From NCBI GenBank assembly GCA_002269645.1, contig NIVC01004160.1:1-57377 (forward strand): a stretch of DNA of 57,377 nucleotides. Direction: 5' to 3'. The position numbers were made by a program, and so were the translations under genes. The DNA comes from Macrostomum lignano. Lineage: Eukaryota. Of this stretch, positions 6,718 to 57,377 are shown in pieces. The notes beneath the pieces were generated by a model that worked only from the letters and a program-made list of their open reading frames with translations, had not been told where the DNA came from and made no database searches. How positions within the stretch are numbered: position 1 is the stretch's first letter; each line of letters starts with the position of its first letter.

Positions 6718-9700
6718 ATGCCATCCAGCAGAGGTGGCGGCATCAGCCTGCTGGGCCTGCCGCTTCTGCTGCTGCTCGCTGCGGCAGCTGTGAAGCCGGC
6801 AGAGTCCGTGTTCTCCTTCAAGGAGGGCAAGCAGTACGTGTACGATGTGGAGACGCACACGAAAACCAAGGACATCGGTGACCTGTTCGTCACAGGCCAG
6901 GTAGAAACAATTGTACAATCGCTTAGTGACGTGTATGCACCTGTAGGAATTTTAAAAATCAACCTAACTGCTTTTATTACCGTTAATATTTACCTAGACA
7001 GGTAATAATGCATGTAGCTTAATTTTTATCACCCATTGACTATATTGATTTAAATTTATTAAGATTAAAGAGAAAGTTAAGAAATTTTGATCAATTGCAG
7101 TTAAAAAATTTTTAATATCTTAAGGTTGGTTTGTGGCCGAGTCTCGGGTTTGGTTCATGGCCGAAGCTCGGGTTTGGTTTATCGCCGAGTCTCGGGGTTG
7201 GTTTATGGCCGAAGCTCGGGGTTGGTTTTGGACCGAATCTCGGGGTTGGTTTATGACCGAGTCTCGGGCTTGGTTTATGGCCGAGTCTCGGGTTTGGTTT
7301 ATGGCCGAGTCTCGGGTTTGGTTTATGGCCGAGTCTCGGGTTTGGTTTATGGCCGAGTCTTGGGCTTGGTTTATGGCCGAAGCTCGGGTTTGGTTTATGG
7401 CCGAGTCTCGGGTTTGGTTTATGGCCGAGTCTTGGGCTTGGTTCATGGCCGAAGCTCGGGTTTGGTTTATCGCCGAGTCTCGGGGTTGGTTTATGGCCGA
7501 GTCTTGGGCTTGGTTTATGGCCAAAGCTCGGGGTTGGTTTATGCCCGAAGCTCGGGGTTGGGCTCGGGGTTGGTTTATGGCCAAAGCTAGGAGTTGGTTT
7601 ATGGCCAAATCTCGGGGTTGGTTTATGGCCGAAGCTCGGGGTTGGTTTATGGCCGAAGCTCGGGGTTGGTTTATGGCCAAAGCTCGGGGTTGGTTTATGC
7701 CCGAAGCTCGGGGTTGGGCTCGGGGTTGGTTTATGGCCAAAGCTAGGAGTTGGTTTATGGCCAAATCTCGGGGTTGGTTTATGGCCGAAGCTCGGGTTGG
7801 TTTATGGCCGAAGCTCGGGGTTGGTTTATGGCCAAAGCTCGGGGTTGGTTTATGCCGAAGCTCGGGGTTGGTTTATGGCCAAATCTCGGGGTTGGTTTAT
7901 GGCCGAAGCTCGGGGTTGGTTTATGGCCAAAGCTCGGGGTTGGTTTATGCCCGAAGCTCGGGGTTGGTTTATGGCCAAATCTCGGGGTTGGTTTATGGCC
8001 GAGTCTTGGGGTTGGTTTATGGCCGAGTCTTGGGGTTGGTTGATGGCCGAGTCTTGAGGTTGATTGATGGCCGAGTTTCGGGGTTGGTTGATGGCCGAGT
8101 CATGGGGTTGGTTGATGGCCGAGTCTTTGCTCCGATCAGAAATGTTCCAGCATCGATATGGCTGAATCAATGAACTCGCAACTTCGCTGCTTTTATCTCA
8201 TTTTCTTGAATGTCATTGCGTCAGCTGTTTCAACCCTAACATCGATCCCCGGTTTTCAGTTTTCCATCCAGCTGCAAGGCAAGGAGCCGGATGGATCTCA
8301 GCACCTGGCCCTGACGCTGACAAAGCTGCACGCCAGGAACGGCCGAGGCCAGACTGCGGGTCAGGGCAGCGACGTCAAGCTGGATGGCTGGTTCAGCTTC
8401 CACCTGGACCCAGCCGGCCGGGTCAGCCATGTCCGGTATCCGCATGACGAGACTGCGTTCTTGGCCACTGTGAAGAAGGCCATGGTCACAGCGCTTCTTG
8501 GACACGATGACGTAAGCCCGAAAATTTCAGTTTCCATGCATATATTTCCTCTCACCGCCAAAATTTCATTGAATGACTTTTCAAAGCTGCTTTATGTAAA
8601 CCCAATTCAGGAGTACAAGTTCCACAACACTCACGAGTGGAGCACCAAGAATCGCACCATCGGTCGGTATCACACCGAGATTTCAAAGACCAGGCGCGGA
8701 GTTCATGGGAACAACGTGCACAGAAATGTCACCCATGTAAGCTTTCACACTTTTATGACAATTCTTTGCAGCACAGGCGTGCACACGATTTGCACTGGAG
8801 GAGAAGGCGAAACTCTTGGGGTGTCTTGAGCGGCACCCCTGTCTCTTGATTGGAGCAACTGTCTTTTGGTGGGCGACCCTGTCTCTTAGGTGGGTGCCCT
8901 GTTTCTTGGTGGCTGACACTGTCTCTTAGGTGGGTGCTACTGTCTCTTGGTGGCTGACACTGTCTCTTGGTGGCTGAATTTGTCTCTTAGGTGGGTGCTA
9001 CTGTCTCTTGGTGGCTGACACTGTCTCTTAGGTGGGTGCTACTGTCTCTTGGTGGCTGACACTGTCTCTTAGGTGGGTGCTACTGTCTCTTGGTGGCTGA
9101 CACTGTCTCTTGGTGGCTGACACTGTCTCTTGGTGGCTGACACTGTCTCTTGGTGGCTGACACTGTCTCTTGGTGGCTGACACTGTCTCTTGGTGGCTGA
9201 CACTGTCTCTTGGTGGCTGAATTTGTCTCTTAGATGGGTGCTACTGTCTCTTGGTGGCTGACACTGTCTCTTGGTGGCTGAATTTGTCTCTTAGGTGGGT
9301 GCTACTGTCTCTTGGTGGCTGAATTTGTCTCTTAGGTGGGTGCTACTGTCTCTTGGTGGCTGAATTTGTCTCTTAGGTGGGTGCTACTGTCTCTTGGTGG
9401 CTGAATTTGTCTCTTAGGTGGGTGCTACTGTCTCTTGGTGGCTGACACTGTCTCTTGGTGGCTGACAATGTCTCTTGGTGGCTGACACTGTCTCTTAGGT
9501 GGGTGCTACTGTCTCTTGGTGGCTGACACTGTCTCTTGGTGGCTGACACTGTCTCTTGGTGGCTGACACTGTCTCTTGGTGGCTGAATTTGTCTCTTAGA
9601 TGGGTGCTACTGTCTCTTGGTGGCTGACACTGTCTCTTGGTGGCTGAATTTGTCTCTTAGGTGGGTGCTACTGTCTCTTGGTGGCTGAATTTGTCTCTTA

Positions 9701-12350
9701 GGTGGGTGCTACTGTCTCTTGGTGGCTGAATTTGTCTCTTAGGTGGGTGCTACTGTCTCTTGGTGGCTGAATTTGTCTCTTAGGTGGGTGCTACTGTCTC
9801 TTGGTGGCTGAATTTGTCTCTTAGGTGGGTGCTACTGTCTCTTGGTGGCTGACACTGTCTCTTGGGTGGGTGCTCCTGTCTCTTGGTGGGCGCCCCTGTC
9901 TTTTAAGTCGACCCTGCCTCTTGATTTCCCTGTCTCTTGTAGCTACCCCCGTCTCTTGGTACCCTATGGCTTGGAAGGTATGCATATGCCTGTAAAAGAT
10001 GCGGCTAGAATGGAGCTTCTTTCCATCATCAAGATTGGAAATGCGCTTTTGCATTTTGGAGAAGCGTATTGCAGTTGGGAGCCATTTTTGGCGTGCGACT
10101 GGAGGCTGGACGATCTTCCAGTCGGCCCGAATGCCCTCCTGCTATAAAGGCTACTGTCATTCTCTAATTATTCCAGACCATGCACTACAATCACGTCACA
10201 CGTCTGCCTGAGAGAACTTTCATACACGATGAGATCCACTTCTTTAATGATCAACCTGAAGGGTGAGTCAGCGAAGCGTCTATCTGCCGCATGAGCATCC
10301 TCATACATGTAAACAGGTACTCTAAAATAAGGAACGTTTCTCTAATCGCAATATTTCAGCTTCGATTCGGGCGTCAAGGTCAGGAAGGGCCCACGGGTGG
10401 TGATGGACAGGGAGCACGAAGATCCGACAAGTGTGTCCAGGGTGACCACCACGGCAAAATCGGAGTTCACGCTATCTGAAGTTCGAGACGCTTCACCGAT
10501 CAAACAGAGACCAGCAAAGCTGGCGTCTGAGAATATTAACCAGACCAGGGTGAGCTCATGGAGTTGCCAGTTAGCGTTTTGAGCATCGCAGTACATGCCA
10601 ACTCACTATCCGTGTTTCAGCTGCATGAGGTGTTCCAGTCCGACTACGATTTACGAGACGTTCGGCGCGGCATCGACTCCAACCTCACCTGTATAGCCAC
10701 CGACACTGCGGAATGTGAGTTTGCTTAGCTAAATTATTTGTCAAGTTGAAAAGCTTTTGCTTGACTTTATTTTTGTCTTACGCCACTAAATTTTAGCCAA
10801 ATCCGACGCTATCGACTGCTACCACAACTTGGTTCAAATATTGCAAGGACTGTCTCAGCGAGAGCTGAATGAAATTGCTTCCATGTACTTGGACCGGCCG
10901 TATGGCAATATGTAAGCTCGCGCTTTTATTGGGATACCTGCTGTTGCTTTTGAGATCAACCGCAGCGAGCACACATGTAACTTGCTGCTTGATCTACCTA
11001 CATTTCAGCACAAAGGATCTGGAGAAGAAGAGGTTCCTGGCCATGCTGGATGCAGTCTGCAGTGTTGGCTCCGTTGCATCTGACTTGATCATCAATAAAC
11101 TGGTTCTCAAGTCCAGGAGCAGACATCCGGAGCTCGTCCAGAGGGTGCTCGTGTTTCTGGCTACAAGAAAGAACGCCCCAGCAAACGTGAGCTGAAGAAT
11201 TTGGAATGCCGTATCGAAATCGTAGAATACGGTAGTCCGCTTAAGTAGGGCTTTGAACTCGTGACTCGTGTTGCAAAATGCGTTATCAAAAAGCAAAATT
11301 TTCAATTTTAGCATTAAACTTCGCAATATTTCTCCTTCTGGATTTTCGAATTGCACATGAGCCAAGTATTGTTCGTAGGAAAAAATTGGAAGAGCATAAT
11401 ATTGCAGAGTGCAGAGTTCACAATTACATTTGTTTTTTAGTTTCGTGTTGTGATTTATTATTACCAGATATTGTTATTACCTTCTACTTAAGTCGTTCAT
11501 GACTCAAAGAGTACCAACATCCGGGTGCCATGATAAAAATGATGCTGTTTAAAAATGGTTTTAGGCCCTGGTGAATACTCTGGTCACGTTTGTGTTCAAT
11601 CCCGAGGGTCAGCCCGATATCAATGACCCGGACACTTACCACCGCTGCGTGCTTGCCCTCGGCACCGTCTGTCGCCTGATGCAAAGCTACGGCAACCAGC
11701 AGCAGAAGGCCATGGCTCAGAGCATAGTTAGCCAGCTGGAAAAATTGACCGAAGTCTTCGGTGAGTAAAAATATCAGAAATTGCTTTCATAAAGAGCTTC
11801 AAAATTGACAATTTAAAAGCCTCGCTTTCAGATCCGTACCATCACCGGTCAAAGAGGGACGTCATGGACGATGCAACATTCGAAAGGTTCATATTCTTGA
11901 AGTCTTCGCTGATTGACAGTTTAGGAAATGCCGCTTTTGAGAGTTCATTTGAGGTCATCCAGTCCTACTCTAACGAGTCGTCGGCACCCACTCTGTGGAA
12001 GCGTTCTGGGCTGCATTCTATGCGCAAATTCGAGACTATTGAGGTTTGTCTTTGTAGTAAACAGTCTGATTGCTCTCCTCAAGCGGGACTTTTATTTTTG
12101 TTTTTTGCATCCTGTTTTCAGGCAGCGTCAACAATCCTCACTGCCGCACTAACTGACTCTGACGAGCACGTTCGATACGAGGCCAGCCTGATGTACGAGG
12201 CTCATCCGTCAAAAACTAAGGATATTGCCACCATGCATCGCGAATTTGTTGAAGGGTGCGTTCAAAACGAGTTCTTTAACCCTATATGTAATTTGTTTAA
12301 ATCAATAATTATTTATTTTGCTATATATTTGCGCTCCGTGTTGTAGAATT
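6718..12350 (+). CDS. N-terminal large lipid transfer protein (vitellogenin-N/MTP-like) domain exons
   Basis: FSFKEGKQYVYDVET after the signal peptide matches the LLTP beta-barrel start. Helical-domain motifs CVLALGTVCRL, LIDSLGNAAF and KRSGLHSMRKF match the LLTP alpha-helical region (LKSLGN.G ... R..A..ALR). Confidence 0.7.
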
Positions 12351-15300
12351 GATAACGGAACTCTGCTGATGTCGCACAATATCTCCAAGCGCAGCGTGCA
12401 AGGCGTGCTCGAGAAAATGTGGAAGGGAATCCATGTGAAGCTGGCGGCTCCAGGCGTCAACTGGCAAAAGATGATCGGCAGCACTAAAATCGGCGGCTCG
12501 TTCGGAATGACCGCCTTGAATGAGCTCATTGTGAAGCTGGGTACGCTGAGCCTTGCTGATTCTTATATACTGTATATAATAGCAACAATCAGATGCTACT
12601 TATTCCAAACACGCCCTTAAAAATACAGCCTTGATCGAGGGTCAGCTTACGGTAAACGTGCACGACGAGGTTTTCGCTAGAGGACATCTGGGCGTAATTG
12701 GCATTCACATTGACTTCTTTCTGGCCAGAGTCTGTTTTCGAGGCGGTGTTGAGTACAAGATCAGCATTCTGAAGGAGTTTGGAGTCAACAGCGTGCAGGA
12801 TTTGGTGAAGCTTTACGACCGGACGATTGGAGCGCTCTACAAAGGTGTCAAGGACGCAATTAACGGATTTCGAAAGCTCTTTGAACCTTCAAATCCCAAC
12901 CAGGTGTTTAGCATAACTAAAAACTTGCGCAAGGAGTTTCGAAGGCTGCCATACGTGGTGTCAGATCTCGCCAAGTCGATTGTGCAAGCGGTGGATATCC
13001 TGGCCGAGGTCGACCCGCTTGAGTTGCCGTCTCACGTGAGGCCGCTGTTCGCGGTACTGAAGAAGATGGCCACTCTGGCTAACGATATCAAAGCCGATGT
13101 TACAGGATTCTATTACGTGAGTTTATAGCACTTTGAGTGAAATCAGTTATTCGACTTTCAAATGTATAGTTTAAAGTGTGATAAGCTTCTGATCCGAAAT
13201 GCAATAATTAGACCCTACACGACGCGATCGAGAACCAAATCCCGATGTCTGCAAAGCAAACTAAGGAGGGTTTGGATCTGCTGGTGAAAATATTCCCAAG
13301 GATTTTCCGCTCCCCGAAGGAGGCCATCATGAACGCATTCAAGTCGTTCTTCCAAATCGGAATGGGGGTGAACGGGTTTCTCGACGCCAAAAATCGAACT
13401 CTTGAGGCGTGTTTCTTTTTGAAAGGTGAGCAATTTGTTCTGCCGTATCTATAGAAGTCGCACCTAAAACATGAAAAACATTTCTTAACGAATACTTCAC
13501 AATGCTTGTTTCAGAGGAGAAGCCCTACTGGTGGAACCTGACCGATCACTATCGCAACTTGAAGGCGGAATTCGCCGAGGCCCTGCGCCACATGGAGAGA
13601 GGCCGTCGGGCCGTCTTAGCGCTGGAGGGCTCGCAACAGAACGGCACGAGACCGTTTAGCGCAATGTCGGACTCAGTGAGACACCTGTTTTCTGTTTACC
13701 TGCCACTTTTCACGATCAAATTTCCGCTATAGAAGCCCTGGACCAGGCTTGTTATCTGCCTCGCTTATAGCTATTTCAGCGATCTGCGCCTGGTGCAGAA
13801 TTTGCTGCTTTTCCAAGAAAATCTGAATTCCTAATATAGAACAGAATTCTTATCAGTTGCGAAGTGGGGAAAGTAGAAGCTCCGGTTGGCATAGTCAAAA
13901 GTTTACAGCTAAAATGTCTACGACTATCTTATAGTTTAGTACCGAGCCTTGTAGCTCACAGAAAATTCATTCGCTAAATGCATTAGCAAAGAATGACTCT
14001 GAGAATTTCTGCTTGTCAAATGCAGTATATTTAAGTGCAACCTCAAGTTCGTTTTATTTTTCTACAAAAAAGCTCAAGCCTTTCGCTCCACTGCCTGTGA
14101 TGCTTCTGAGTCTTTAAAAACTAACTGACAGCGTGTTTTGATTGGGTTGTTGTTGCTGTTGGTAACTTTGTTTTCAAAGTAATTTACCGGTACGACCGAC
14201 AGTACCCACATCGTTCATTTGATCGTCTACATTTTCAGTAATGAATAAATTACTGAGGTCTATACATGTCAGTGACATTTGGTTTAAAAAACAAAATTTT
14301 TCATTCAGGAAACAATGAAGCTAGTGGGCCTCCTAAAGGATGTCCAGGACCTGTTGATGGAACCGTTGAGCGGCTTCCGTGGAGCCTTCGGCCCACTTGA
14401 AAACCAGATCCAAGGAATTCTGCAGATAATTCGCGGCTTCAAGGAGGCCTACCAAGGAGCCAAGGAGAGCTGGAAGAGGATCAGGAGCATAGCGGAAGCC
14501 ATCATGGGTCCGAGGGCGCACTCCGAGTTTCAAAGGACTTACCGGCTCGCCGGGAAAGGTTGCAAATCCGATGGCTTCTATCCATCAGACGCTGACAAAC
14601 TGTGGAATCATCCTGGCGTGGATTTGGCCGTGGAACCTGGCGAAAAGGTCGTTGTGCCGTTCAAAGGCGAGTACTACCGAGGTCCCGAGGGTTCTAACCA
14701 GCTCGTGATTGTTCCGAAAGGATTCAGCATGGAAAAGTTTCACTTCATCTTGGAGAACGTGAAGTTCGAGATGGATGACGGTCGATTTGAAGCCAGCGAC
14801 TTGCCAGTCTTCGATATGGAGCAAGGAAACAGCCAGCCAACTGAGGGCTTGGAGCTGAGCGCTGGGGACAAGCTCGGCGTGACTGGCTCGACACCCAAGT
14901 GCGAAAACCACATTCACCTATCCGCCAGGGCTGGCCCTGGTCGCTACCTGGATTCCAGCAAGTACCTTGAGCCTCGAGTGATGAAAATGCCAAAGTGGGA
15001 GCAGAAATGCGACGACTACAAGCTGGTGATACTTGGTAACGTGATCGCCGAAGGGGCGATCGTGGGATTAAAAGGCCGGAAGGATGAGGACACCAGCCCT
15101 GAAAGAGAAGCAACCGAGGAATCCGTGGAGCCGCTTGAAACTGACGAAGTCGATCTCTTTTCCAACGTGGAAGCTGACTCAGTTCGCCTGCCGCGCAGCT
15201 CCATTCTCGGCAACGTGGGCAAAGCGGTAACCAGCATTCTCGACTTTCCAAAAAAGCTGGGCGTCGACAAAATCTTTGATAGGTTCAGCTTGCGCCGCCT

Positions 15301-18300
15301 GAGACTCGCCTACGTCGTTGCCTTTCTAGAGGCTCCGGCGATTCAAAATCATTTTGAAAAGACCAGAGAGAAAATGGATAAACTACTGCTGACGATCAAG
15401 GATGTACTGGAAGATCAGCCGTGCCAGAGCCCCTACCTGATGTCTGAGGAAGAGCTGCGTAACGAGCTCGTTAAGAAAGGCTTTGGCAAATCGGAGGTGG
15501 AAGTCATGCCAAAGGCCAGTCTTATCGATAGGATGAAGCAGAGTGATTCCCGTGAGTAAAGCTTGCTCTAGAATTCAATATTTTAGGGAATGCAGACGGT
15601 AGCTCATACTTCATCTCATTTTAATAACATCACAGGCTGTCCGCTTCTGCAGCTGTCGCTGCCGAGACCAGTTTACTGTCAGTTCGACAAGAGCTGCCTC
15701 TCGGTGGAGTGCTGCATTGACCTCAAGGTGAAGGTGTTCCGCAAAGCGGCAAAACTCTGGGCCAGGCTGGACCCGTGCGGCAGCAGCAAGAAGCTGGAGT
15801 TCGGGCTCAAGATGAAGCACGTGAAGACCGTAGTGTACACAATCGATTTCAACAGATTTTTTCCTGAAGGTAACCTTGTTAGTTTCCCGATACATAAAAA
15901 TAACTAGCAGTACTCTATCAATGATTAGCTTTTCCTAAACAAAGATTTTCGCCAATCTTACTTCAGATTTCGAAGAGAAAGAAATCTGGCTGCCAGACGC
16001 TCTGCAGTTCCTTAAAGTGCTGAAAATGAAGCTGCGGCTGTCGTACCAGTTCGCCAAGTCGGAGGAAGCCCTAATGTTCAGCCTTCGCCTGTCCGCGTGC
16101 TCATCCAGCTCGAGCTGCGAGGTGGACATCCAGGTACTCCAGGAGCTCGTCCTGCCGCTGCCAATCTGCAAAGATGGCTTGGTCACCTGGCCGAAGATGA
16201 ACTGGCAGCAGATGCTGAACAAGAACCACCTGAAGTCCCTGCTTCAAAAGACTTCTACGTCGGTCATCAACGCCATGATGCAGAAGTGGTGGGAAGAGTT
16301 GCTGCAGACGATGGGTCTGGGGGACTTTGCCGACGTCTTCAATGCCAAGGCCTGCACCCTGCCGAACAAGGTCTCCAACGAGGTGCTGCTAGAGGGGCTG
16401 ACGGAGCGTGGGGTGCAGATTTCCGACCCTAGCAATAAAACGGTGCTGGTGCAACTGGCGGAACTGCACTTCCGCAAGTGTCGCAACGGGCCGCTGCAAC
16501 TGGAGTTGCCGCAACTTCCTGGTGCACTGAGAAGTCGCGTCTTTTGCCAGGTGTCCCCGAACTGCACCAAGTTCGAGTGCTGCATGGGACTGGAGGCTTC
16601 CATCAGAGGTTTTGAGATTGCAAAGTACTTGAAAGGTGAGTGCTAATTTTCAATAGTATTTCTGAAAGAATAGTCCCTTCTGACTAATTACCGACAAATA
16701 TTACAGGCTGGGCAAAAATGGACGCGTGTACTTTAACATTCAGCTTCGGTTTCAACTCGCTGACATTCAACAAGGTTCTGTTTGCGATTCCATACGGCAA
16801 GGAATTTCTACAAAATGTTGGAGCCCTGAAGCTTAAGTGAGTTAATATTCGAGCTTACATGTTCGTTTAGCTGGTTATTGAGTTCTTGCATCGACTCATA
16901 AACTATTGCGATGAACTCGCATTCCGAATCCCAGGTACCGATTTAACGAGAATCCAACCAGCAATGAGGCGCCGCTGTTCAGCCTGGAGCTGGCGATCTG
17001 CCCGGGTTCGTCTTCATGCCTACTGGACTACATCAGTGTGCTCAATCGCGTGCCCGTGCCGGTGCCTTTCTGCGGCAACGACTGGCACCGAATCCTGCCG
17101 GGCAACACCGACAAGCTCGAGGATTTTCTCCGCGAGCTCGGAACTTCGGCCAGCCAGGCGGCGCTGGATAAGGCGGCGGAGATCCTGCTCACCAGGACGG
17201 GACTGAACAGGATCATCTCCAAGGGCCGGTGCGCCAGACAGAGCAATTTCACCGCCTGTCCGCACGTGCGCCTGCCGCAGCTGCCGTCCAATTTGCAGTG
17301 CCGAGTTGCAGACAACTGCATGGGCCTCGAGTGCTGTCTGGACTTTGCCTTCAAAACTAGCAAACTCGATCTCAGCTTTCTCAACTACCACGCCAAGGCC
17401 TGGATTCTGCTGGACACGTGCGAGTACGCCAGCTCGATTGGCATTGGTGCGCTGCACTTCAACACATCCCTGTTGGAAGCTCATTGGGGCCAGAAAAAGT
17501 CCCAGTGGATTGGCAACAAGGCCGTTCGATTGGAGTGAGTCAAATTGAGATTTGATGTAAATAGTAATATTAATTGACTGCGCCTGCCCTAATGGGCAGA
17601 TGTGCAACCGACAGCTCAGCCGCAGCTATTGCGCGGCGCATCTAAAGGCTGCGTACAGCTGCTTTTGGTCCAAGAACTGGGGGTCGCCACACACACCCTC
17701 AATTACCACCTAATAAGGCTAAATTGGAATCTCAGCTCGGGTCTGATCCTGCAATTAACGCCCTTGAGAGCCAAACACCAAGGCACAGTGAAGTGTGCAT
17801 GCTTAGCGATAAATAAATTTAGGGCCGCTGTAAACTCCCGTGTGAGTGTGTGCCTGTGCGTTTGACTGCGTAGCTCGTACGTATCCGCACGCCCTGCTCA
17901 GGGGAGGGCAAGTAATGCCTTTCACCGGCTGCTTTTGGTCCAAGAACTGGGGGTCGCCACACACACCCTCAGTTACCACCTCAGGTAATACCGGTACCCA
18001 TTTTACAGCTGAGTGAACTGAATCAATGCAGAGTTGTCTTGCTCAAGGACACAAATTGTTCCAGTGGGATTCTTAATCGAACCCCTGACTTTTAATTCGT
18101 AAGTTCGACGCTCTAACCACCAGGCTACAACCCCTTAATGTGTTCTCCTTTAGTAACTAATTCAATTCGATGCTTTAATTGAACCAAGTTTCAGTTGGTT
18201 TGTTTATCATTTAATTCAGTATATCAAGTTTTACTTTGCTGAAAAGTAAAAATTGACATTGTCTTTTTCTCAGAGCGAAAATACGTCTGACCGTAATTTG

Positions 18301-45300: not shown

Positions 45301-48300
45301 TCTGCAAGTGCCAATCAGTTTGAGTACCAGGTAGTAAACATGACTCTCGTTCCGGTTCCTCCTGGCTGCCAGAGCAAGTTTAGAGGAAACTGGACCAGTC
45401 CCGACCTTGACGATAACAGCATTATAGAGGAGAGTTTCAACGGTCAGCAGCAGTACCCGTACGTGTCCGAGCTACACAGTCGGAACAAGAGAAGCCAAGC
45501 TGCTCCGTCTCCGGCAGCGCAAGGCTTCAACACTGGCATGAACGACCAGATGGATCCGGTAACTGAAATGCTCAGAGATGTCAGCGGCCAGTCAGACTTA
45601 CTGGAACAGTGGTCTCACCTGGGCTTTGAAGCAGTGAATCAGCGCATGCAGGAAATAGTAATGCGCAAAGCGGCTAGCTTGGGAATCAGCATGCCGTCAC
45701 CCGAGGATGACAAGCGAGTTCAGCAGGACTTGCGCGACAGCGCAGGAAGTTCCATTCGTACTGGAGCCATGCTTCGCATGAATCCGCACAGGTTTGCAAT
45801 TCAAATCGGTGGAGAAGATCTCGAGACAAACTTCAAGAAGGGTGTTGAGCACATTCGCGCCGTGCTTCTCAAGGCTTCATCCAACGCAGGAAATGCACTG
45901 CAGGGCGGTGTGTACGTACCTGGACAGGGATTTTCCAAACAGGGACTTGCAGATTTGGCGTACTTGATAGGAAATATGACAGTCTTTGATCTCGCCGCGT
46001 TAATAAACACTAAGAATGTCGACCCGCTGGAGGTTTATCTTCTAGTGAAAGATTTTTCCTTGCTTGTAACTCAAATGGTAAGAACTTTACGTTTAGGGAA
46101 ATATTTCCCTATATTTCCATATATTTGTCTTTCTGCTGAACTGCATGTTGCAAATATTATGATGCCTAAACTTCCAGATCGAAGAGTTATTTGATACAGC
46201 CATCTCAGGAGGATTTAACAGCGAACTTTTCAAGTCATTTGACATCACTTTAAGCGGAAAATTTACTCTATATGATCAATACGTTACGTTCTTCACTGAA
46301 TCGTGGACTTTTGTTATTGGTGGCTTCGTGCCTGTAACGTTTTACTTCAGTGCCGGTGGATTCTTTACGATCGAAATAAAGCTTGAGCTAAAGATATTGT
46401 CAATGACCGCCGCAGCAACGGCCACACCGAAGCTCGGAGCCAAAGTACGACTAGATTTTTACAATGTTTCGCTCAATTTTTTAATATTTCGCCTACTAAT
46501 CTTTAAATTTTTTCTATAGGCTGTCGGTGGCGTGTACATCTGCTTCTTCCTTTGCGGCGGAGCAGAACTGACGGGATACATCATGGAGACCCGTTTCCCA
46601 ACCAGGGCTGAGATCGGATTCAGCAAGTTTCCTCTGGACGTTGGACTCACGTTGGATGTAGAATTGGTTCCTCTGCGACTACAACTGGATGCTATTGTGA
46701 AGCTCGAGTTGAACCTGAAGTTCATAAGAATCAGGTAAAAATATTGTATTGGTAACTCCTTTACCTTGAGCGTGATCGTTGGCAAGCAGACGCCTGTACA
46801 GAATTAGGAAGCTATGCATAGATTAGAGCGTTGGCTGAAACTATGGGACTGATTGAAAAAGTAGACGTCAGTGGCTACAGCGCCAAAAGTATGTTTCATC
46901 TCAAATAAACTTTTGACTTCAGAAAAGTATTCTTCAAAGCTGCCATCTGGAAGTACTCTGCTCCGAAGATTTCGAAAAACATCCTGAACGTGCGGACAGG
47001 CAAGCCGGACGACACGCCACCGCGGATCACCGAAATGGAATCAACACCGGACAGTGCCTTTGCTGTCGGCAGGGAAACTCGACATTGCAGAGTTCTGCAG
47101 CTGCGAGGCAGAGACGTCATGGATCCGGCCTTCCTGCTCGAGATTCAGGCCGAGGACGATGTCAGCGTATTGAAAATGACCTACAGCGTTGGCACGGCAA
47201 AGGGCTTGACCGATATTGTCCGACATGATGAATTTAAAGGACCATCTGCAATCATTGCCCGGGTGCGTTGTTATACATATTTTATGCCCGATTCTTCTCT
47301 CTCGTACACAGCACGCTGACAAAAATTATACAATTCCTATGCAGGTTCTTCCGCACAGCATACCTCTCTATTTCACGGTGCATGTCTCTAATAATCAAGG
47401 AGATACAATTCATGCTACCTGCGATCTTCCCACCTACGATACAACCTTGCCGCGAGGCCGAGTCCAAGAAGACTTTAGGAGCACCAGCAATACCAAAGTT
47501 CTGTCTGCTTTTGTAGTAGCGAGCGATGACTCGGAGATAATTGATACCAAAGTCGCAGTCGGGCTGGGTGTCGATGCGGGTGGAGAGAGCCACACCTTCT
47601 GGAAGAAGCTAGACCTGAACAAGGATGACAACATTAATGGTAAACTTTTTAAACAACGATATTCATAGAGTAGGACGAGTATAATGAGCACTAAGGCTAT
47701 ATTCATATTTTATTATCAACTTTCAGACGGCTACCATTTGAACCATTTCTCTGCGCCAAAGCATGGCCGCCTTGCCAGCGGAGTTTATCTGACCAGGACC
47801 AACATTCACGTCAGTTTTCTCTGCGCTGAAGATTGCCTTAAGCAGGGCGACAAGTGCAGAGCCTTCAACTACCACTGTAAGTAGTTGATTTAGCAAAGCG
47901 CACAACTCTGCAAGTGAAAATTTTTCATTTAACTTTTTCTTTTCCAGCGGTCAACAAAGTTTGCGAACTGACACACGACATTGTGGGGCATCGCTTGAAA
48001 CTATCCGAGAGTGACAGCTTTGCCTACTACGAACGGAAATCAGTTGGGCACTCTGTGAACTTTTTTCAGAGTGGCTTCACTCTGCAGCACAATAACATTC
48101 ACTTTGTCAATCTGTTCGTTAAAAACATCCTGGGCTATTCTTCAATTTTATCGTCGCAGCCGATTTTGACAGACTTCGACCCGCCTCACCCAGGCTTTAT
48201 CGCGAATGCATCCCTTGTAGAAATAGTTTACACAGTGTGCCGAGAAAAGATCATTAAAAAGTGGTGGGACAGGTGCGGTCCAGTGAAGCCGCAGGACGCT

Positions 48301-51300
48301 AACAATGTTGTTCGCACAGAGTTTGAAACGGATCTGAACAACCACCGAAGGATCATCGATGGCAGAGGCTCAACGACATTATTCAATGGACACGACCGCC
48401 TGATAGATGTCAGGTGGACTCGCGCCAATGAATTCATGTCGGCCAACTGGGATGGCTTGCACGACAATGAGACTTCAATTTTCGGCATCACCTGGGCGGC
48501 AGGAACGGATGTATGCGGTACAGACATCAGCCTGGGCTACGGAGATCCGCATGCTCACCTGGGTCACGAATCACAGTGGACCCACATCGGCAGTATACAC
48601 CCGATCCCCAACCCTGCTTACAAAGAGAACGGTCTCCCGGATGGGAAGTACTACTCAACAGTGAGGGCAACGAACAAGGTCGAATTTGGTGGTCCGATGA
48701 CGCTCACGCTGTGCCACTGGAGGCCCATTGTAGTCGATAACTCGCCGCCTCTGGTTCATCACCTAACAGACATAACGTTCGAAGACGAAATTTTAGAGCT
48801 CACCGGTCACTACAACTTTTCGTGAGCGCCTTTTTTATTTTCTGCCGAATTAATCGTTTCTGTCAATGCTAAACGCACTTACATTGTAACACAAACAATT
48901 CTGTTTTAAAATTTCAGAGATCCGCACTCAGGAATCAAGGAATTCGACATTGGCTTGGGGCGTACGAAATTCGACACCATGATTTTAGAATTCCGACCCA
49001 TGCCCTTCATGGGTACTCCTGAGTTTGAGAAGGACGTACTAGAGTTCGCTGACTCGTTTGCCATGACCCACAGACTGCCAGACGGCGTGCCGGTGTGGGT
49101 CATCCTGCGAGCTGAAAACAGCGTAAATCTCAGCACAGTGCAGCACGCTGACCGGCCCATTTTGATCGATCTGTCGCCACCAATCGCTGGCCCCGTGCTA
49201 GACGGCAGCGAATTCAAGCACGACGCCGATTTTGTTGGAAAATCGGACCGCATGTGCGTCAATTGGTTCGACTTCAGAGACGACGAGTCAGGAATCGCGT
49301 ACTACCATTGGCAGCTGTTCCAGGAAGACGATGAGATATATCGGGTTGAATTTGTTGACAGCCACAAGCAAATGCTGTGCATGGATTCGAGCCTCGCTGG
49401 CGGCCAGGAGCTGCAGCACAACACGCGCTATCGCAGTGTCATCACGGCAGTGCACTACGGCCACAGGGAGCTGTCAGTGAACGCATCAAGCAGTGGCATA
49501 CTTTGCGACCTCACTTATCCCATTGTTGGAGAAATTGTTGACGGTCTGGCCTCGGACTTCTCCGATCTTGAGTACTCCTCAAATGCAGCCTCTGTAAGCG
49601 CCCAGTGGAAAGGATTTTCTGACCCTGAGTCCGACATCAAGGAATTCGTCGTGACCGTGCAGAAGTTCAATCCTGGACTTGGAGAATGGGTTTCAGCAAA
49701 AACAGGAAGAATGCTGCAGCCAATCAGACCAGCATTCAGTGGAATCATTTCCATTTCCTGCACAAAGACTTGGTCAGAGTTCAGATTCAGGTTACCAACA
49801 GGGCAGAAAACTCTAACATTACGGCAACATCAGGTTTCTGATCGATCTGACTAAGCCAGTTGTAAACCGGCTGTACGATGGACTCGACGTTACCAAAGAT
49901 GTCGAGTACCAGTCTTCCTTGGACACAATTTCGGCGAACTGGGACTACAACGACCCAGAGTCTGGAGTCACGCATTATCGCTACCAGATTTTTGAGCAAT
50001 CGCACGGAACGAAGCACCAAATCTACCCAGGTAAGACTCTAAACATGTTTTTAAGCTGTATAAAATTAAGACCATTAGTCTAAAATACGAAACATGTTTT
50101 CTAAACTTTGGACTAATATTTTAAAATTTTAGTAAAAGAGCATGACTGGAGTCACGAACTTCTGCCCAATACTACCCACATTGAGCACAGTAACTTGCGG
50201 CTCAAATTAGGAGGTCGCTACTTTGTTAAGATTGTCGGCCAAAACGGAGCCCTCCTAAGGCAGGTGCAAGAGACCAATGGAGTAATCATTGACAACACAC
50301 CTCCAGTTATGTACTGGGTGAAGGTGGACGTCTCGCCCGGAGAGCTGGAGCAAGCTCAGGGCGGATATGTGCGACAGGCGGACAGGACAGGAATCAAGGG
50401 CTGGTGGCACGCAGAGGATCCGGAGTCCAACATTTACGAGTACTTTGTGGCAGTGGGAGATCAACCTGGTAAGAATCCGATTTTTTTCAAGTTAAAATTC
50501 GGTGTTTTGTTGTTTTGTTTCGGATCCTTATTTCGAGCCTGGTGAAATTATAGGGTATGCGAACATACTTAATTGGACAAGCATGTCGCGGCTGAATTCT
50601 GGAAGGCTGTCGCTTGACGTTGAGCTGAATGAGACAGACACCAAGACTCGAACTCCAGTCTACTATGTGAGTACCTACGCTATCAACGGAGCCGGTTTGA
50701 GAAGCGCCATGGTGACATCAACGCCTATAATGGTGGTGGGCCAGGATACCCCCGGCTATCTGATGGATGGTGATGAACCCAGAGTGAATGCCAGGTACCA
50801 GTCCAGCTCCCGATCGCTCACTTGCCAGTTTGAAGGCTTCCGAAGCCCTCTTTACGGAATCAATCACTATGAATGGGCGATCGGGTCACGGCCGATGTCG
50901 GAGAATGTGCAGCGATACACTCGCGTCGGCATTGTTCTGCACGATGAAAAAGAAGATTTCGTCAACTCAGATGATGCAAAGCATGAAGGACTTCCGTCGG
51001 CTGGCCACGCTCAGGTACCGATCCGTTTAGAGCATGGACGAAAGTACTTCTGCACAGTTCGCGGCGTGACGAATGCTGGATACATTCTAGAGGCCAGCTC
51101 TGATGGCATCACTGTAGACCGGACACCACCATTCGTTAAAATCACCAACCTGGGATTGCCTGACGGATCCATCGAAACGGCTGCCTCGATTTATTCCGAG
51201 ACGGTGGACTCACTCACTGCCCAGTTTGAGTTCCGAGACTCAGAGAGCGAAGCAGCATTCGCCTCGGTAATGTACGGCGAGCATCCATACGGGGATTCGA

Positions 51301-54300
51301 TGTTCCGGCGTGAGAGAATCGATCTGGGAGCCGAGAGCTGGCTGGAGTCACTGCGGATGACAGGGTGCACCCGCTGCCCGACGGACAGCCCAACATATTC
51401 ACAGCCATCGTAGAGAACTCGCTCGGTCAGAAAAACGTTACGTCTTCTGCCGCAGTAGTATTCGACTCCTCACCGCCATCTGAGGGAACTCTGCACTGCC
51501 CGCAGTTTACGAAGGTAGAATTTTTTATTTCAATAATTTCTGTGAGCGACTTAGTTTTTATTTACCGCTATCTCTCATGCAGTCTTTCAGCACTCTAACC
51601 TGTAGCTGGGACGATGTCCGGGACCCCGAGAGTGAAATTGATTACTATTCGATTATGATCGGCGAAGCTGAGGGGCGAGCGGAAATCCTTTTGGGCAAGA
51701 ATGTCAGCGGAGATGCGACTTCGTTCACGGTTCACCGTAAGCAAAAATTATTTATATTGCTTATGACGCGGAGATTCTTCGGGGCAAGAATGCCTCGGAA
51801 TTCAGCATAAAGATCACATCTTGTTGGAGACGTACCCCTAATTTATTAGAAAACTTTAGCTTCTCGACAGCACTGTCACTTTGCCATGCTTAGTATGGAC
51901 AGGAGCATGTCATATAGCACAGATTAAGGAACTCATTTACATGCGGCAAGCAAGCCTTTTGCTCCTGCTAGGGACTCAAGGCAGGTTGCTAGCTATGTGT
52001 ACGGGGAATTGATCCAAATTTCCCCAGCATAGAAAACTTTTGGTCAGCAGAAAACCACTTGCGCCTTTACAGCAAGCGAATTCGCAGCGATCATGGAGCA
52101 CAACAAGAACTACTTTGTTACTCTGATTGCCTACAACAAAGTCAAATATTCAACAAAGATTTACTCCAAAGCAATCATCATCGATGACACACCACCTGAG
52201 CACTCAGTGATCGTTGAGCTGTCCGACAGAGTGCAACTGATTAACGGTACCATTCAAGCTCATGACAGCTCCAAATGCACCGATGCCGAAAGCTGCATGA
52301 AAATGGACGTCACGTGCCATCTTGGCTTGGACACTCTGGCTGTGACCTGGGTTCCGTTCCAGGATCCTGAGAGTGGTATATCTCGGTAAGATGAGCAATG
52401 AGTTTGTTAAAAGCTCAAAAGCTTAAAAGCTTTGTTAAAATTTCCTAGAAGAGACTAAGCAATTAAACCAATCTTCTTCAGCTACGAGATAGGACTGGGC
52501 ACCACACCCGGAGCAACGCAGGTGATGGAGTTCACGACGATACCTGCGGACTCAACCACGTACACTTTCACTGGAATTCGACTGGACATTTACAAGAGAC
52601 TGTTCGCGGTGCTGAAGGGCTACAACGGAGCTGAGCACTTTTCCACTGTCATCTCCAGCGGTGTCTTCATCAGCAGAGTAGGTTCTGACCTCGGATTTCA
52701 TCAGCCCATCACGATAAACGATGGTGACCACGTGGGGAAGGACATGTGAGGAAATTGAATTTTTATTTGTGCATTAGAATGCAAATATGCGCAACTTAAA
52801 GATGAAGCATTTGTTTAAAATCAATCTTGATTTTCAGGGACTTCCAAACAAGCGTGGAGCAGCTGAGTGCCTGGTGGGATTTCAGCGGCGAGCCATGTCC
52901 AGTTATTGACTACCAGCTCTACTTTGAGCGCCTTGACGGCCTAGTTGTGCAGAACTTCACGAGTGTTGGGAGTAAGTTGTCATCTCAGGGGCAGAGCAAT
53001 TCAGCCATAAACACGTTTGACTCTCGCATCACGCCCCCGGTTCGATTTGCGCGGCCACATTAATTTGAGGCTTGTGCACAAAAGCTGGCAGCAGGTGAAT
53101 TTAGTGAGACAATGTCACCAAAGACGTTGCGCTGGGGTTTCCGCAAATCCTCCTGCAAAAGTTATTGCTTGTGCGCTCGTATTAAGCTGCCATTTCCAAT
53201 TATTAATTTTATTCTCTTTTCCAATTTATTATTTTTGCTCATTTTTACTGCCTGCTTCGATTCCCAGGGAAGCAGTAAAACTATCTTTCCGGTTTGTCAA
53301 TTTTCAGCGCTTACAAGAGGCAGCCACACAGGACTGAATTTGCAGAACGGAGAGACGTACTTTGCCATTGTCAGTGGCACGACTGCTCTAGTCACATCAT
53401 CACTGTCCGTTCATCCGGCGTAGTGATTCGCCTTGAGCCCATCATTCCAGGCCACGTCTTCGATGGCTCCATTGCAGGCATCGACCTCCACAAGCAGAAG
53501 TCCTACACGCAGCTCTCCTGCAACTGGATGGGTTTCGGAAACGATACGATACTGATTAATCCTAATGGAGGCTCGAATTCGGTGGACAAGCTCGGGCAGA
53601 GGCAGGCTATTGATTACTATGAAGTCGCTTTCGGAACAGACCGGCGCTATCCCAAGACCAGAGACAACGTACTGCCGTTTGTTAATGTGGGCCAGAACAA
53701 GACCTTTACTGCTTACGATCTGGACCTCGTACCCATCAAGGGAATCTACTATGCCACAGTTCGCGCCTACTCAAAAGGATTCGCTACAGCCGAAGTAACT
53801 TCGTCTGGTATAAGAGTGGGCTATGACTCGACTGTGTTCAGTAAGTTTGTAACAATTCATTTATCAAAACTATTTGCTGCTATTGCAGTATATGGCAAAT
53901 AAAAATTATTTTTATTCCAGAGGCGGATGTCAATATCCCGCGGTTTGTCAGCACTGCGAATGCGGCAGAAGTTTCCGAATCAAATTCCGAACACTACAAC
54001 CTGCGATACTCATGGAACAAGTTTACATCCGCTCTAAATGAAAAGCAGGAACTGGAAATTGTGTCTTACTTTACAGGAATTTCAAATATGCCGATTCCAT
54101 CCGATTTTGATTGCAAAGAAATTGTGAGTGCAAGAAGCAATTCAGTGTCCGTATTACAAGTACATGCGAATTATACACAAATTTTATTAAATATTATACT
54201 TATACTCAAACTAAAATAACTTCATCTTTTAGCTGTACGACAAAGATAGCACAGGTGAGCTGTATAATTTCACATTCAACGTGAATCCTCTAAGCTCGGT

Positions 54301-57300
54301 GAGCACAGACACAATGGTGAAGCTGACAGATCTAGAGCTGGAGCAGGCGGAAACTCTTTACGCAATGGTGATTGGTTTGGACGAGGCCGGAGAATGCAAC
54401 GGAACAGTCGCCAGCTTCATGTTTGACAACAATCCGCCGTCTAAGGGAGAAGTCACTGCTGGTCCATTCTACGACATGGTAAGCTCAAACTTAAATTGAT
54501 TTCCGGTTAAACCATCTGATGGCTGTGTTAAGTCCCTTTTTCAGAAACTGTCATTCTCTCTGGAGGCTGGCGCACTGCATGTCAAGTGGCGAGGCTTCGA
54601 AGACTCAGATTCAGGTCTGTCGCACATCAAGCTGCAACTTTGGAGAGCAAAGGGCTGTGCACCATCCGAGTTGAAGAACCTCACGGCGGTCGCTGATATC
54701 ACTGGGCTGGAAGCATCTGTCAAAATCAACGACACCGCTTCCATCAGCGAAGTGACCTTCCGAGATCTGGATCTGCAACCTGGAGTTCCCTATATTGTAA
54801 CAATTGAGGCTGAAAATCGAGCCGAGCTCATAACACGACACCGCACAACTCCAATCCTACTGGACATATCTATGCCAACAGCGGGCTTCGTCACGGATGG
54901 TTCGAACTTTACAGAGGACGCAGAATACTCCGGCAGGTCTGACTCCCTCCGCGCAACGCTGCTGCACTTCCCCAAGGCATCACTGATCCTTGCCCGCCTC
55001 AGAAGTCCCAGTAGAACTGAGTGGCAAACTCTTAACACAGCCGGGCTCTGGAATGTGGACGAGTGGTGGAGCTTGCGGTTCCGCCATGACTTGGCGTCGC
55101 CAATTGGTCAAGGTGGTGCTGATTGGGACCTGCACCTGGAGCGCGATCTATCATCAGCAAGAGTGCTATCTGGAGCCATACAAGCGGACTCACATCTGGG
55201 CATTGGTGCCTCCTACAGCTTCAAAGCTCAGGTGGCGAATTCCAGTCGCGTGGTTACCAGCCTGGTTTTGTGGAATGGCCCATCTGGCGTAGTTGGAGAC
55301 ATCGACTATGTTCCTGAGAAGACTGGTCTCAATACACCTGCAGTTGCTGCGTCTTCCCTGACCCCATTCGATTTCCGAACTGCAGCGATCTTTGCGAAGG
55401 ATGCTCTCCGGAATTTTTGGACTACCTAAGGGTAAATATAAGCAGGGACCTCAGCCAGCCGCCACCAACCCGAGACCAACACGAGCCCCAGGCTCAAAGC
55501 TGATTGAGAATGCTCTGCCTCTGCCGGATGATACTCTGCAAGGCGATTTTGATGAAATCAACCGAATCCACTCTGCCTGCGGATTACAGATTCTATACGA
55601 GCCAGCCGACAGTCCCGCTATTCTGCTCTGGTGCACTCACGACAACAACTCATTTCGGCTGTCCGTGAGCTGATTTCGCTCGACTTTGATCCCAGCGCGG
55701 AGTTTCACAACTACACTTTGCACTTTTTTAGCATAGCCCAGGACACTGGCTATAGAGAATGACCGCCAGAGTTGAGGGTTGATGGCGCTATGCTTGGTGT
55801 GGTGTCTGTGTCTGCCTAGTATTCCGCAGGCTCGGGTCACCCTGCTAGCCCACACCAAGGCCAACTTCGTGCCGCCGCTCGATCCGGACAACGTGCTCGA
55901 TCGCTGGCGCTCGTGGTGAAGCTGAGGGACCTGCGGTTGCCCCAGCCAACCAGTGAGAAGTGTCGCTACGGCAACGCCTTCGTTGCGGGCACGAATCCCA
56001 TCGTTGCCTACAGCGGGCAGTGTTCTGGAATGAGACTCAGGTGTCCGACTGGCAGGTTCTGTACAAGCCCTGCATACCTTGCTTGCACGACTGCGACTAT
56101 CTGCACTGCGACCCCAAGTGCAGAGACAATGGCTTCACAGAGGTGCGACTGATGCTAGCTGGGCTGAAATTGAAAGATGGCGAAACATACCAATTTGGGG
56201 GTGAGTTTTGCTTTTCAATTTTTAAGCATACAATTACGAGCTATTAAGTTCAATAATGATCCCCTTACTTCATTTATATTTTAGTCAAAGCAACACTTGC
56301 AAATGGTCAGTCTGCTGTGTCTCTGAGCACCGGGCAGCTTGTTGATACAACACCGCCTGAGGTGGACAATGAAGCACCTCTATTCTATAATGACCCCACC
56401 GCTCCATACCCGTATGCGCCGACAAACTACACGGCCTCGACTACAGAAATTCGGGCAGTTTGGATCATAAGCGACAATGAGTCCTTGATCATGGTAAGCT
56501 GCTCTGAATAACGAAACTTAGCAGGTGCGATGTTGAAAACGTACCGATCATAATTACCTCAATTGTAGGAACATTTCTGGGCGATCGGCAGTGCACCAAA
56601 AGGCACAGACTTGCAGCCCTGGACATCTGTCGGTGCGCTACCTTCGGGCACAAACTCGCAGCTTGTATTGACTAACGGCCGCAAGTATTTCGTCAGCGTG
56701 CGATCTGTAAATAACGCAGGACTCGCGACAACGTACTACGACAAGATCGGACTGACCGTGATGACCGACCCACCGGAACTTGGCAACATCAACGCTAGCC
56801 TGGTTGGCGTTAAAGGACTTCGACTTCGAAGTGTCTCCACCGGATGCCAAGATGCAAACCGATCAGAGTGTAGTTGGGGCAACACTTCGGTTTAATCTGA
56901 TAAGAGCGTCGAGTACTATGGTAACCTTCAAACCCAAACTTAGAGTTGTTGTATTTTTCTCTATTCGACATAAATTTTAATCAAGCAATTTAAATAATTT
57001 ATGATGGCATACAGTTGACGCTTTTGGTTTGCATTTTTCAGAGTTCTGCATCAGCAGCGCAGAAGACCGGCTCGACGACATTCTACTACCGTGTATTCCT
57101 GCGCCAAAGATGAACGAGTCGGATGCGGGTGTGACCGTTCAAATTCGAAATAACACTATTCACTGGAACGATTTTGATGGCTCAGACGAAAATATAACCC
57201 TTGGAGTCTCAACCGAACTCATCCGTTGAATCGTTGCGGAACCGATTTTTCTTGGAGCCGGGAAAGTGAGTCTTAATTAATTAATAAACTTGCCTTTTAC

Positions 57301-57377: not shown

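Follow-up and report, generated by a model that had tools for sequence, protein, structure and literature searches.

Large lipid transfer proteins (LLTPs), i.e. the yolk proteins, lipophorins, apoB, and MTP, are known as lipid carriers that circulate or reside in the lumen of the endoplasmic reticulum. We analysed a stretch of 57,377 nt from Macrostomum lignano (GenBank assembly GCA_002269645.1, contig NIVC01004160.1, positions 1 to 57,377, forward strand; below, “the window”), in which a giant plus-strand gene is predicted to encode an LLTP-type head, an M23/LytM-like domain with a SAP-like motif, a long array of cysteine-rich repeats, and a stalk of PAN and FN3-like modules. An initial annotation, made from the sequence alone, had proposed a secreted protein of this general composition.

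The predicted protein resembles the LLTPs (vitellogenin, apolipophorin II/I, apoB, MTP) in the succession of a signal peptide and a Vitellogenin_N-type module, in its multibasic sites, and in being a very large protein of the secretory pathway. In contrast to them, it has no detected DUF1943, DUF1944, or vWD domain and no profile similarity to the solved LLTPs. It adds an M23-like domain, a SAP-like motif, 21 novel repeats, and PAN and FN3 modules, its full length is probably ~9,000 aa, and its orthologue from the nemertean Lineus has a transmembrane anchor. We are not aware of any characterised LLTP with a membrane anchor or with this layout.

Three further comparisons concern single parts of the protein. 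With the LytM/M23 proteins (SpoIIQ, LECT2) it shares the only fold that the profile of the M23-like domain matched in the PDB as well as the conserved HxH and aspartate, but the domain is embedded in a giant multidomain protein, and its first zinc histidine varies among the orthologues. Like the amphipathic beta-belt of apoB100 and the sheets of MTP, the repeats are predicted to consist of antiparallel beta strands, and the region that follows them has long predicted strands with weak matches to MTP and apoB100. In contrast to a continuous belt, however, the repeats would be discrete, disulfide-bonded domains with a helix, and they have no fold match in the PDB. The giant FN3-rich type I surface and matrix proteins are alike in having an FN3-like array near a PAN domain and, in the Lineus orthologue, cadherin-like and EGF matches and a single transmembrane helix; unlike theirs, the FN3-like modules are divergent and reach Pfam fn3 in only two stretches. 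We know of no FN3-rich surface or matrix protein with an LLTP head, a LytM-like domain, or this cysteine repeat.

One predicted gene from 6.7 kb to the window end

Scanning from stop codon to stop codon showed that, on the plus strand, long open frames are numerous between 6.7 kb and the window end. A dynamic-programming splice model, which combined codon log-odds (trained on the largest open frames) with GT/AG sites and phase consistency, gave a chain of 66 exons at 6718-57229, beginning with the ATG at 6718 and comprising 8,232 codons with zero internal stops. The exon phases are continuous, and the introns are mostly 60-100 nt long, apart from one of 10.6 kb (30398-41041). The exons between 7001 and 10177 are poorly resolved. 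Forced exon chaining always yields a single chain, so that the model alone is weak proof, and it was tested against independent proteins.

The RefSeq protein XP_064642445.1 of Lineus longissimus (7,342 aa) aligned colinearly with the plus strand from 12387 to 56808 (tblastn), and this single protein matched all blocks of the gene model in the same order (Table 1). The region 8299-15109 was covered by same-order tblastn alignments of other orthologues, i.e. those of Batillaria, Branchiostoma, and Potamilus. Single proteins of these three genera and of Lineus extend across the junction between the LLTP and M23 parts at 13.7-14.3 kb. Identity to proteins of distant phyla amounts to 26-37% along the whole product. 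From M. lignano itself, the UniRef fragment A0A1I8J2Q2 aligned with model residues 3115-3786 in long identical blocks with only indel-type breaks, which assigns the window to M. lignano or to a nearly identical strain. Queries with an 864-aa exon and with the M23 exon gave zero matches in a word-indexed protein database.

Two or more adjacent genes, one with the LLTP, M23, and repeat parts and another with repeats, PAN, and FN3, might have been joined wrongly in both the window model and the Lineus model. The behaviour of forced chaining would allow this, and a corresponding split is seen in the database models of Branchiostoma, Sinanodonta, Potamilus, and Mya, some of them with neighbouring locus tags. 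However, these splits fall inside the repeat arrays, where predictors and assemblies commonly break. Furthermore, apart from the one intron that bears a retroelement (see below), the span contains no gap of intergenic size, and the exon phases run through without a break. The end of the repeat array and the start of the following unique region lie within one exon of 2.4 kb (43674-46077), the next intron has only 100 nt, and the Lineus protein spans all parts. We regard wrongly joined genes as decidedly unlikely.

The reading frame appears broken at one place, in the R13 linker, where ...SGLLVNRLGIA is encoded in frame A and ...VQYLRPSQCNLASPPPDKCPHM in frame B; joined, they give the consensus linker. 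An apparent 1-nt frameshift at ~29.93 kb and the insertion of a retroelement would be expected of a decaying pseudogene or an assembly artefact. Against this, the site is also compatible with a 44-nt GT-AG intron or with an indel error of the type found in the older gene model from M. lignano. Elsewhere, >8,200 codons run without interruption. The retroelement is intronic and leaves the host reading frame undisturbed, and the 26-37% conservation with distant phyla extends throughout. Decay or artefact is highly improbable.

From 6718 to the window end, the stretch is one predicted protein-coding gene of M. lignano with a young long terminal repeat (LTR) retroelement in one intron. This agrees with the initial annotation, which had described one chain of plus-strand exons, for a protein of ~8,000 aa or more with the modules in series, and had named 13.7-14.3 kb and 46 kb as possible breaks; both are bridged, by the orthologue proteins and by the shared 2.4-kb exon, respectively. 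The span that it gave, 6718-57377, holds as one gene but includes 30419-40990, a minus-strand LTR element that does not code for the giant protein.

The last model exon stops at 57229, and homology with Lineus suggests a splice donor before the stop at this position. For about 950 residues of the Lineus protein, the window encodes no equivalent; therefore, the gene should extend beyond the window by about as many residues. The full product probably has a size of ~9,000 aa.

The lipid-transfer head

Directly after the ATG, a hydrophobic stretch at aa 6-27 forms the predicted N-terminal signal peptide. In the subsequent motif FSFKEGKQYVYDV, the G and both Y residues are invariant in an alignment with three orthologues. 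BLASTP of the window N-terminus against the N-termini of orthologues gave identities of 27-31%, with E values of 1e-76 to 1e-100. Vitellogenin_N (PF01347) was matched in the window at aa 427-621 with 21.5 bits (cut-off 24, E 1e-4), covering profile positions 348-525 only. The cut-off is exceeded in the orthologues of Branchiostoma (44.3 bits, profile positions 77-551 of 590), Potamilus (34 bits), and Batillaria (29.9 bits), and two orthologue records, Batillaria among them, carry a precomputed PF01347 annotation. The lipid-transfer module that had been recognised in the window is thus borne out by three orthologues, but its match in the window itself is too low for Pfam.

Pfam scans found no vWD domain in the window model or in the scanned parts of the orthologues (residues 6300-7342 in the case of Lineus), as had been noted from the sequence before; the C-terminal vWD of the vitellogenin/apolipophorin subfamily is likewise missing from the parts scanned. 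DUF1944 had no Pfam match in the window or in the orthologues. When a profile of the LLTP head was compared with the PDB, the only matches were artificial HEAT-like alphaRep and designed helical proteins, which were rejected.

The M23/LytM-like domain and the SAP-like motif

A single exon encodes the M23/LytM/LECT2-like domain and the SAP-like motif. For Peptidase_M23 (PF01551), the window scored 17.2 bits, compared with a cut-off of 28.7, and three orthologues scored 18.2, 23, and 28.8 bits (the last from Batillaria) with the full profile covered. A phmmer search of the PDB with the M23 exon gave no match, and an orthologue profile was needed. A profile built from six orthologues matched 17 PDB sequences, all of them with the M23 fold; the best was SpoIIQ (E 4.4e-4), LECT2 had an E value of 0.008, and LytM, lysostaphin, and other M23 peptidases were also among them. 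Assignment to the M23/LytM/LECT2-like fold appears reasonable. For SAP (PF02037), the window was not reported at E<=1, and the aligned segment of orthologues reached 31.8-38.8 bits.

The zinc ligand set HxxxD plus HxH is complete in the window copy, which has ~13 extra residues inserted in comparison with the orthologues. The aspartate and HxH are invariant across the orthologues. The first zinc histidine is found only in the window and in Potamilus and is absent in four of the six orthologues. Because it is mostly missing, a binding role of the domain is as likely as catalysis. The M23 zinc domain that the first reading had named is therefore reasonable as a fold, only M23/LytM/LECT2 structures having been matched, but not as a conserved zinc site, and its score in the window is below the cut-off.

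LLTPs and PAN domains can bind microbial surfaces, and the protein could be an immune effector, in which the M23 domain would be an active peptidoglycan endopeptidase on a scaffold for pattern recognition. The HPGVD and HIH motifs are correctly placed in the window copy, and the presence of lysostaphin, LytM, and other M23 peptidases among the profile matches would be compatible with such an activity. The replacement of the first zinc histidine in most orthologues and the low Pfam score of the window argue against it, as do the closest structural relatives by sequence, since the LytM domain of SpoIIQ and LECT2 are non-catalytic. An active endopeptidase is improbable.

A new cysteine-rich repeat

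The 21 tandem repeats R01-R21 were defined by self-BLASTP, anchor spacing, and alignments. Their consensus is CP..LP..C..C.G..CC..LDL..SF..W..VDPC...GFENW..N.SL...WG...IG..L.Y...C..G.C...L...P.P.C..NG.L.WP, with a helical linker after it. When 20 of the units were aligned, six cysteines proved invariant; in total, ~10 cysteines are present in the majority of units. There are two recurrent N-x-S/T sequons, each with its own fixed alignment column, and of the 21 units 12 carry the one and 10 the other. The early units (15.6-30.4 kb) have introns at the same three positions, i.e. after about residues 8, 95, and 148 of the unit, and the later units (41.0-46.1 kb) are encoded by large intron-free exons. 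This suggests that a three-exon unit was duplicated and introns were lost thereafter, or that the reverse took place.

No Pfam family was found for the repeat, either in the window or with 15 repeats of an orthologue. An AlphaFold2 model, calculated with the internal copies as alignment, has a predicted local distance difference test (pLDDT) value of 81 and a predicted template modelling score of 0.69, and consists of nine antiparallel strands and a C-terminal helix. Foldseek comparison of this model with the PDB gave a best E value of 0.05 and template modelling scores of <=0.26; the matches to PUR-alpha, lipocalin, and the PP7 coat were discarded as chance. A HMMER search of 1.84 billion representatives with the repeat profile retrieved 825 proteins at E<=1e-3 and 37 at E<=1e-30. 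The repeat is a new domain, predicted to be all-beta, disulfide-rich, and sequon-bearing, in agreement with the novel cysteine repeat array that had been described from the letters of the window.

Multibasic sites, unique region, and stalk

Two multibasic sites are present. The first one, RSKR in the head, aligns with the majority consensus RQKRS of a four-sequence alignment. The second one, the furin-type RNKR after the last repeat, has counterparts at the same position in Lineus (RTKR), Mya (RRKR), and Sinanodonta (RRR). It is followed by a conserved “unique” region that has no Pfam family and is 33-40% identical to proteins of Lineus, Sinanodonta, Branchiostoma, Ptychodera, and Mya. Its AlphaFold2 model is of low confidence (pLDDT 55), and the weak top matches in Foldseek were MTP (E 2.6e-3), apoB100, and pore forms of MACPF proteins. 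The likeness to the sheets of MTP and apoB is only a lead.

Downstream, PAN and FN3 modules were both found above the Pfam cut-offs, as the initial annotation had it. The FN3-like modules contain the recurring motifs W.GF.D.ESGI..Y and D.(T/S)PP, and a self-built hidden Markov model detected 17 FN3-like stretches at aa 6053-8151. The FN3 part is 28-37% identical over >1,000 aa to proteins of Lineus, Sinanodonta, Branchiostoma, and Ptychodera.

The C-terminus of Lineus XP_064642445.1 has cadherin-like/Big_9 and weak EGF matches, a helix at 7072-7099, a KKRK stop-transfer sequence, and a tail of ~240 aa. In the window protein, no transmembrane segment was found after the signal peptide; the window ends ~950 aa before the expected C-terminus. 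Because the full-length Lineus orthologue has a C-terminal helix and a tail, the giant protein is probably a type I membrane protein rather than simply secreted. The description as “secreted” has to be qualified. Cleavage at the conserved multibasic site may release the first 5,400 aa.

A fully secreted scaffold of mucus, an egg coat, or an adhesive, without any membrane anchor, would explain the signal peptide and the cysteine- and sequon-rich ectodomain, and M. lignano produces giant secreted adhesive proteins. The window shows no anchor, and the N-terminal 5,400 aa could be liberated by cleavage at the conserved multibasic site. Nevertheless, a window that stops this far before the C-terminus is uninformative with respect to an anchor, and the only full-length orthologue has the transmembrane helix and the tail. 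We consider a fully secreted protein a serious alternative, albeit an unlikely one.

Relatives in other phyla

Relatives were found in bivalves (Potamilus, Sinanodonta, Mytilus, Mya, Argopecten), in the gastropod Batillaria, in Lineus, in amphioxus (three Branchiostoma records), and in the hemichordate Ptychodera. The sea star Patiria gave a repeat-only match of 400 aa. Uncharacterised homologues in other invertebrates had thus been rightly anticipated. The names of the relatives are all “uncharacterized”, “hypothetical”, or rule-based domain names, with the exception of one Mytilus record called TDRD9, and a search of the full-text literature found no paper on this domain layout; the impression that the layout matches no characterised protein is upheld. 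Many relatives cover only part of the layout, and some lie on neighbouring locus tags, which fits with annotation breaks inside the repeat arrays as the cause of fragmentary records. As far as the predicted proteins tell, the gene belongs to a family that had not been studied before and whose parts keep their order in Nemertea, Mollusca, Cephalochordata, and Hemichordata.

Two records deviate. KAL3862603.1 of Sinanodonta woodiana has the M23-like domain, SAP, and 15 repeats, but a differing C-terminus (residues 3485-4604) with a saposin-B-type match of 26 bits (cut-off 25.2). The family may include paralogues in which a different lipid-binding part forms the end; alternatively, this gene model could be a fusion. 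XP_070573688.1 of Ptychodera flava has one cysteine repeat between the M23-like end and the unique/PAN/FN3 part. Either the number of repeats ranges from 1 to 21 across lineages, or the Ptychodera model is truncated.

Proposed function and significance

On balance, and with a confidence only a little above even, we favour a single gene for a type I surface protein with an LLTP head, which is cut by furin after the repeats, binds lipid or microbial ligands, and uses the LytM-like domain for binding. The precursor would enter the secretory pathway and acquire many disulfides and glycosylation. A furin-type convertase would then cut after the repeat array; the C-terminal FN3/PAN stalk would remain anchored in the membrane, and the N-terminal subunit of ~5,400 aa would either stay attached or be shed into a surface coat. 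As ligands of the LLTP head, and perhaps of the beta-sheet repeats, we envisage lipid or amphipathic molecules of microbes. For the LytM-like domain, which has lost a zinc ligand in most orthologues and is close to SpoIIQ and LECT2, binding would probably be the main task, not hydrolysis. The binding of lipid and bacterial cell wall and the mucus, egg-coat, adhesive, or immune roles that the initial annotation had proposed are conjectural. An extracellular location is supported by the signal peptide, the ~10 cysteines in most repeats, and the recurrent N-x-S/T sequons. Processing is supported by the finding that four lineages have a multibasic site in the corresponding position behind the array, and apolipophorin II/I and the insect vitellogenins undergo comparable cleavage by convertases.

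Several points weigh against this proposal. For M. lignano, the single mRNA is deduced from the splice model and protein homology, most of the annotated orthologues are incomplete records with only part of the layout, and there is an apparent frameshift at ~29.93 kb. The Vitellogenin_N and M23 matches in the window itself are under the Pfam cut-offs. The DUF1943 open-beta-sheet lipid cavity was undetected by Pfam in the window and in the orthologues, and the profile of the LLTP head found no lipovitellin, MTP, or apoB in the PDB; lipid binding is therefore a conjecture. The complete HxxxD and HxH set leaves catalysis possible in the window copy. Cleavage at RNKR is a prediction, and the C-terminus lies beyond the window, the anchor being inferred from one predicted orthologue.

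A bolder variant, to which we assign a low probability, sees the family as a third ancient bilaterian branch of the LLTPs that was lost in vertebrates and ecdysozoans. It would form a membrane-anchored lipoprotein coat, with the repeat as a new lipid-associating fold. The LLTP head and the beta-sheet repeats would hold a lipid layer that is tethered via the FN3 stalk, instead of forming a circulating particle.

Judged from sequence similarity, we would place the family within the LLTP superfamily as a new subfamily that is deeply conserved and has a previously undescribed layout and a new repeat domain. A membrane-anchored relative of ~9,000 aa with a LytM/LECT2-like domain and 11-21 copies of a 185-aa domain, in at least five bilaterian phyla, would widen the roles of the LLTPs. 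With the repeat, there would be a new family of extracellular domains that counts hundreds of database members and has neither a Pfam entry nor a solved structure. With respect to annotation, many “hypothetical proteins” of molluscs and amphioxus probably represent pieces of a single giant gene. M. lignano is amenable to RNA interference, in situ hybridisation, and transgenesis.

Table 1. Features of the giant gene, blocks of the Lineus orthologue, and the nested retroelement (positions in the window unless given as residues).
Feature	Position	Strand	Details
Start codon and signal peptide (MPSSRGGGISLLGLPLLLLLAAAAVKPAES), then LLTP-type motif FSFKEGKQYVYDV	6718-6804	+	open frame 6688-7002
Vitellogenin_N-type module and helical extension	6718-13675	+	13 model exons, aa 1-1020
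Multibasic RSKR	11846-11857	+	aa 558, in LLTP helical domain
Single exon with M23/LytM/LECT2-like domain and SAP-like motif	14309-15551	+	Pfam, orthologue alignment, PDB profile matches
M23-like core	14516-14998	+	
HPGVD	14609-14623	+	aa 1121-1125
HIH	14909-14917	+	aa 1221-1223
SAP-like motif	15434-15541	+	
21 tandem cysteine-rich repeats R01-R21	15521-45495	+	aa 1425-5412, period ~185 aa; interrupted by introns and the LTR element
R13 linker, apparent frame break	29912-29955	+	44-nt GT-AG intron, unusually short, or 1-nt frameshift correction needed
Multibasic (furin-type) RNKR	45481-45492	+	directly after last repeat
Conserved “unique” region, no Pfam family	45496-47022	+	helical 45496-45999, then predicted very long beta strands 46000-47022
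FN3-like array	47065-57229	+	~17-18 modules, ~113 aa each; Pfam fn3 46.8 bits, cut-off 25
PAN/apple domain	47819-48036	+	Pfam PAN_1 27.8 bits, cut-off 21.4
Lineus XP_064642445.1, LLTP part	residues 83-933		
Lineus XP_064642445.1, M23 part	residues 959-1338		
Lineus XP_064642445.1, 11 repeats	residues 1351-3438		
Lineus XP_064642445.1, unique region	residues 3519-4003		
Lineus XP_064642445.1, PAN and FN3-like part	residues 4016-6386		
Ty3/gypsy-type LTR retroelement	30419-40990	-	10.6 kb, in intron 30398-41041; Pfam matches and LTRs
LTR	30419-31256		838 nt
LTR	40134-40990		857 nt
Retroelement open reading frame, gag with CCHC knuckle	39545-37107	-	
Retroelement open reading frame, protease and N-terminal part of reverse transcriptase	37191-34054	-	
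Retroelement open reading frame, C-terminal part of reverse transcriptase, RNase H, integrase	34297-31934	-	

The nested retroelement and neighbouring features

The large intron harbours a retroelement of the Ty3/gypsy type, in which two LTRs enclose gag (with CCHC), protease, reverse transcriptase, RNase H, and integrase in this order. The LTRs share 584 identical nt at one end, and the remainder is rich in indels. The reverse transcriptase profile is split over two frames near 34.1-34.3 kb, so that pol is interrupted as sequenced. The minus-strand open reading frames at 31.9-39.5 kb were excluded as parts of the giant gene, Pfam having identified them as retroelement. A sub-threshold match to a “Monjiviricetes_fusion” glycoprotein (22.7 bits) upstream of the retroelement protease is probably due to chance. 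The element also contains a cysteine-rich open reading frame of 137 aa (31439-31849).

Five minisatellites were found, at 2223-2859, 7124-8126, 8839-9889, 19478-20169, and 21836-22117, with units of 35, 24, 20/41, 15, and 24 nt, respectively, and up to 51 copies. Four of them are located in introns of the giant gene, and they give rise to spurious long open frames on both strands. The open frames at 7.1-8.2 kb and 19.1-20.3 kb were rejected as coding sequence; they are minisatellites and intronic in the model. Two further intronic segments, 17593-17862 and 25052-25240, share a 46-aa open frame with 89% identity and may represent a dispersed repeat or a transposon fragment. Upstream of the giant gene, its neighbour on the opposite strand is represented by a Mob1/phocein exon at 3826-4497 (minus strand, Pfam E 1.6e-59).

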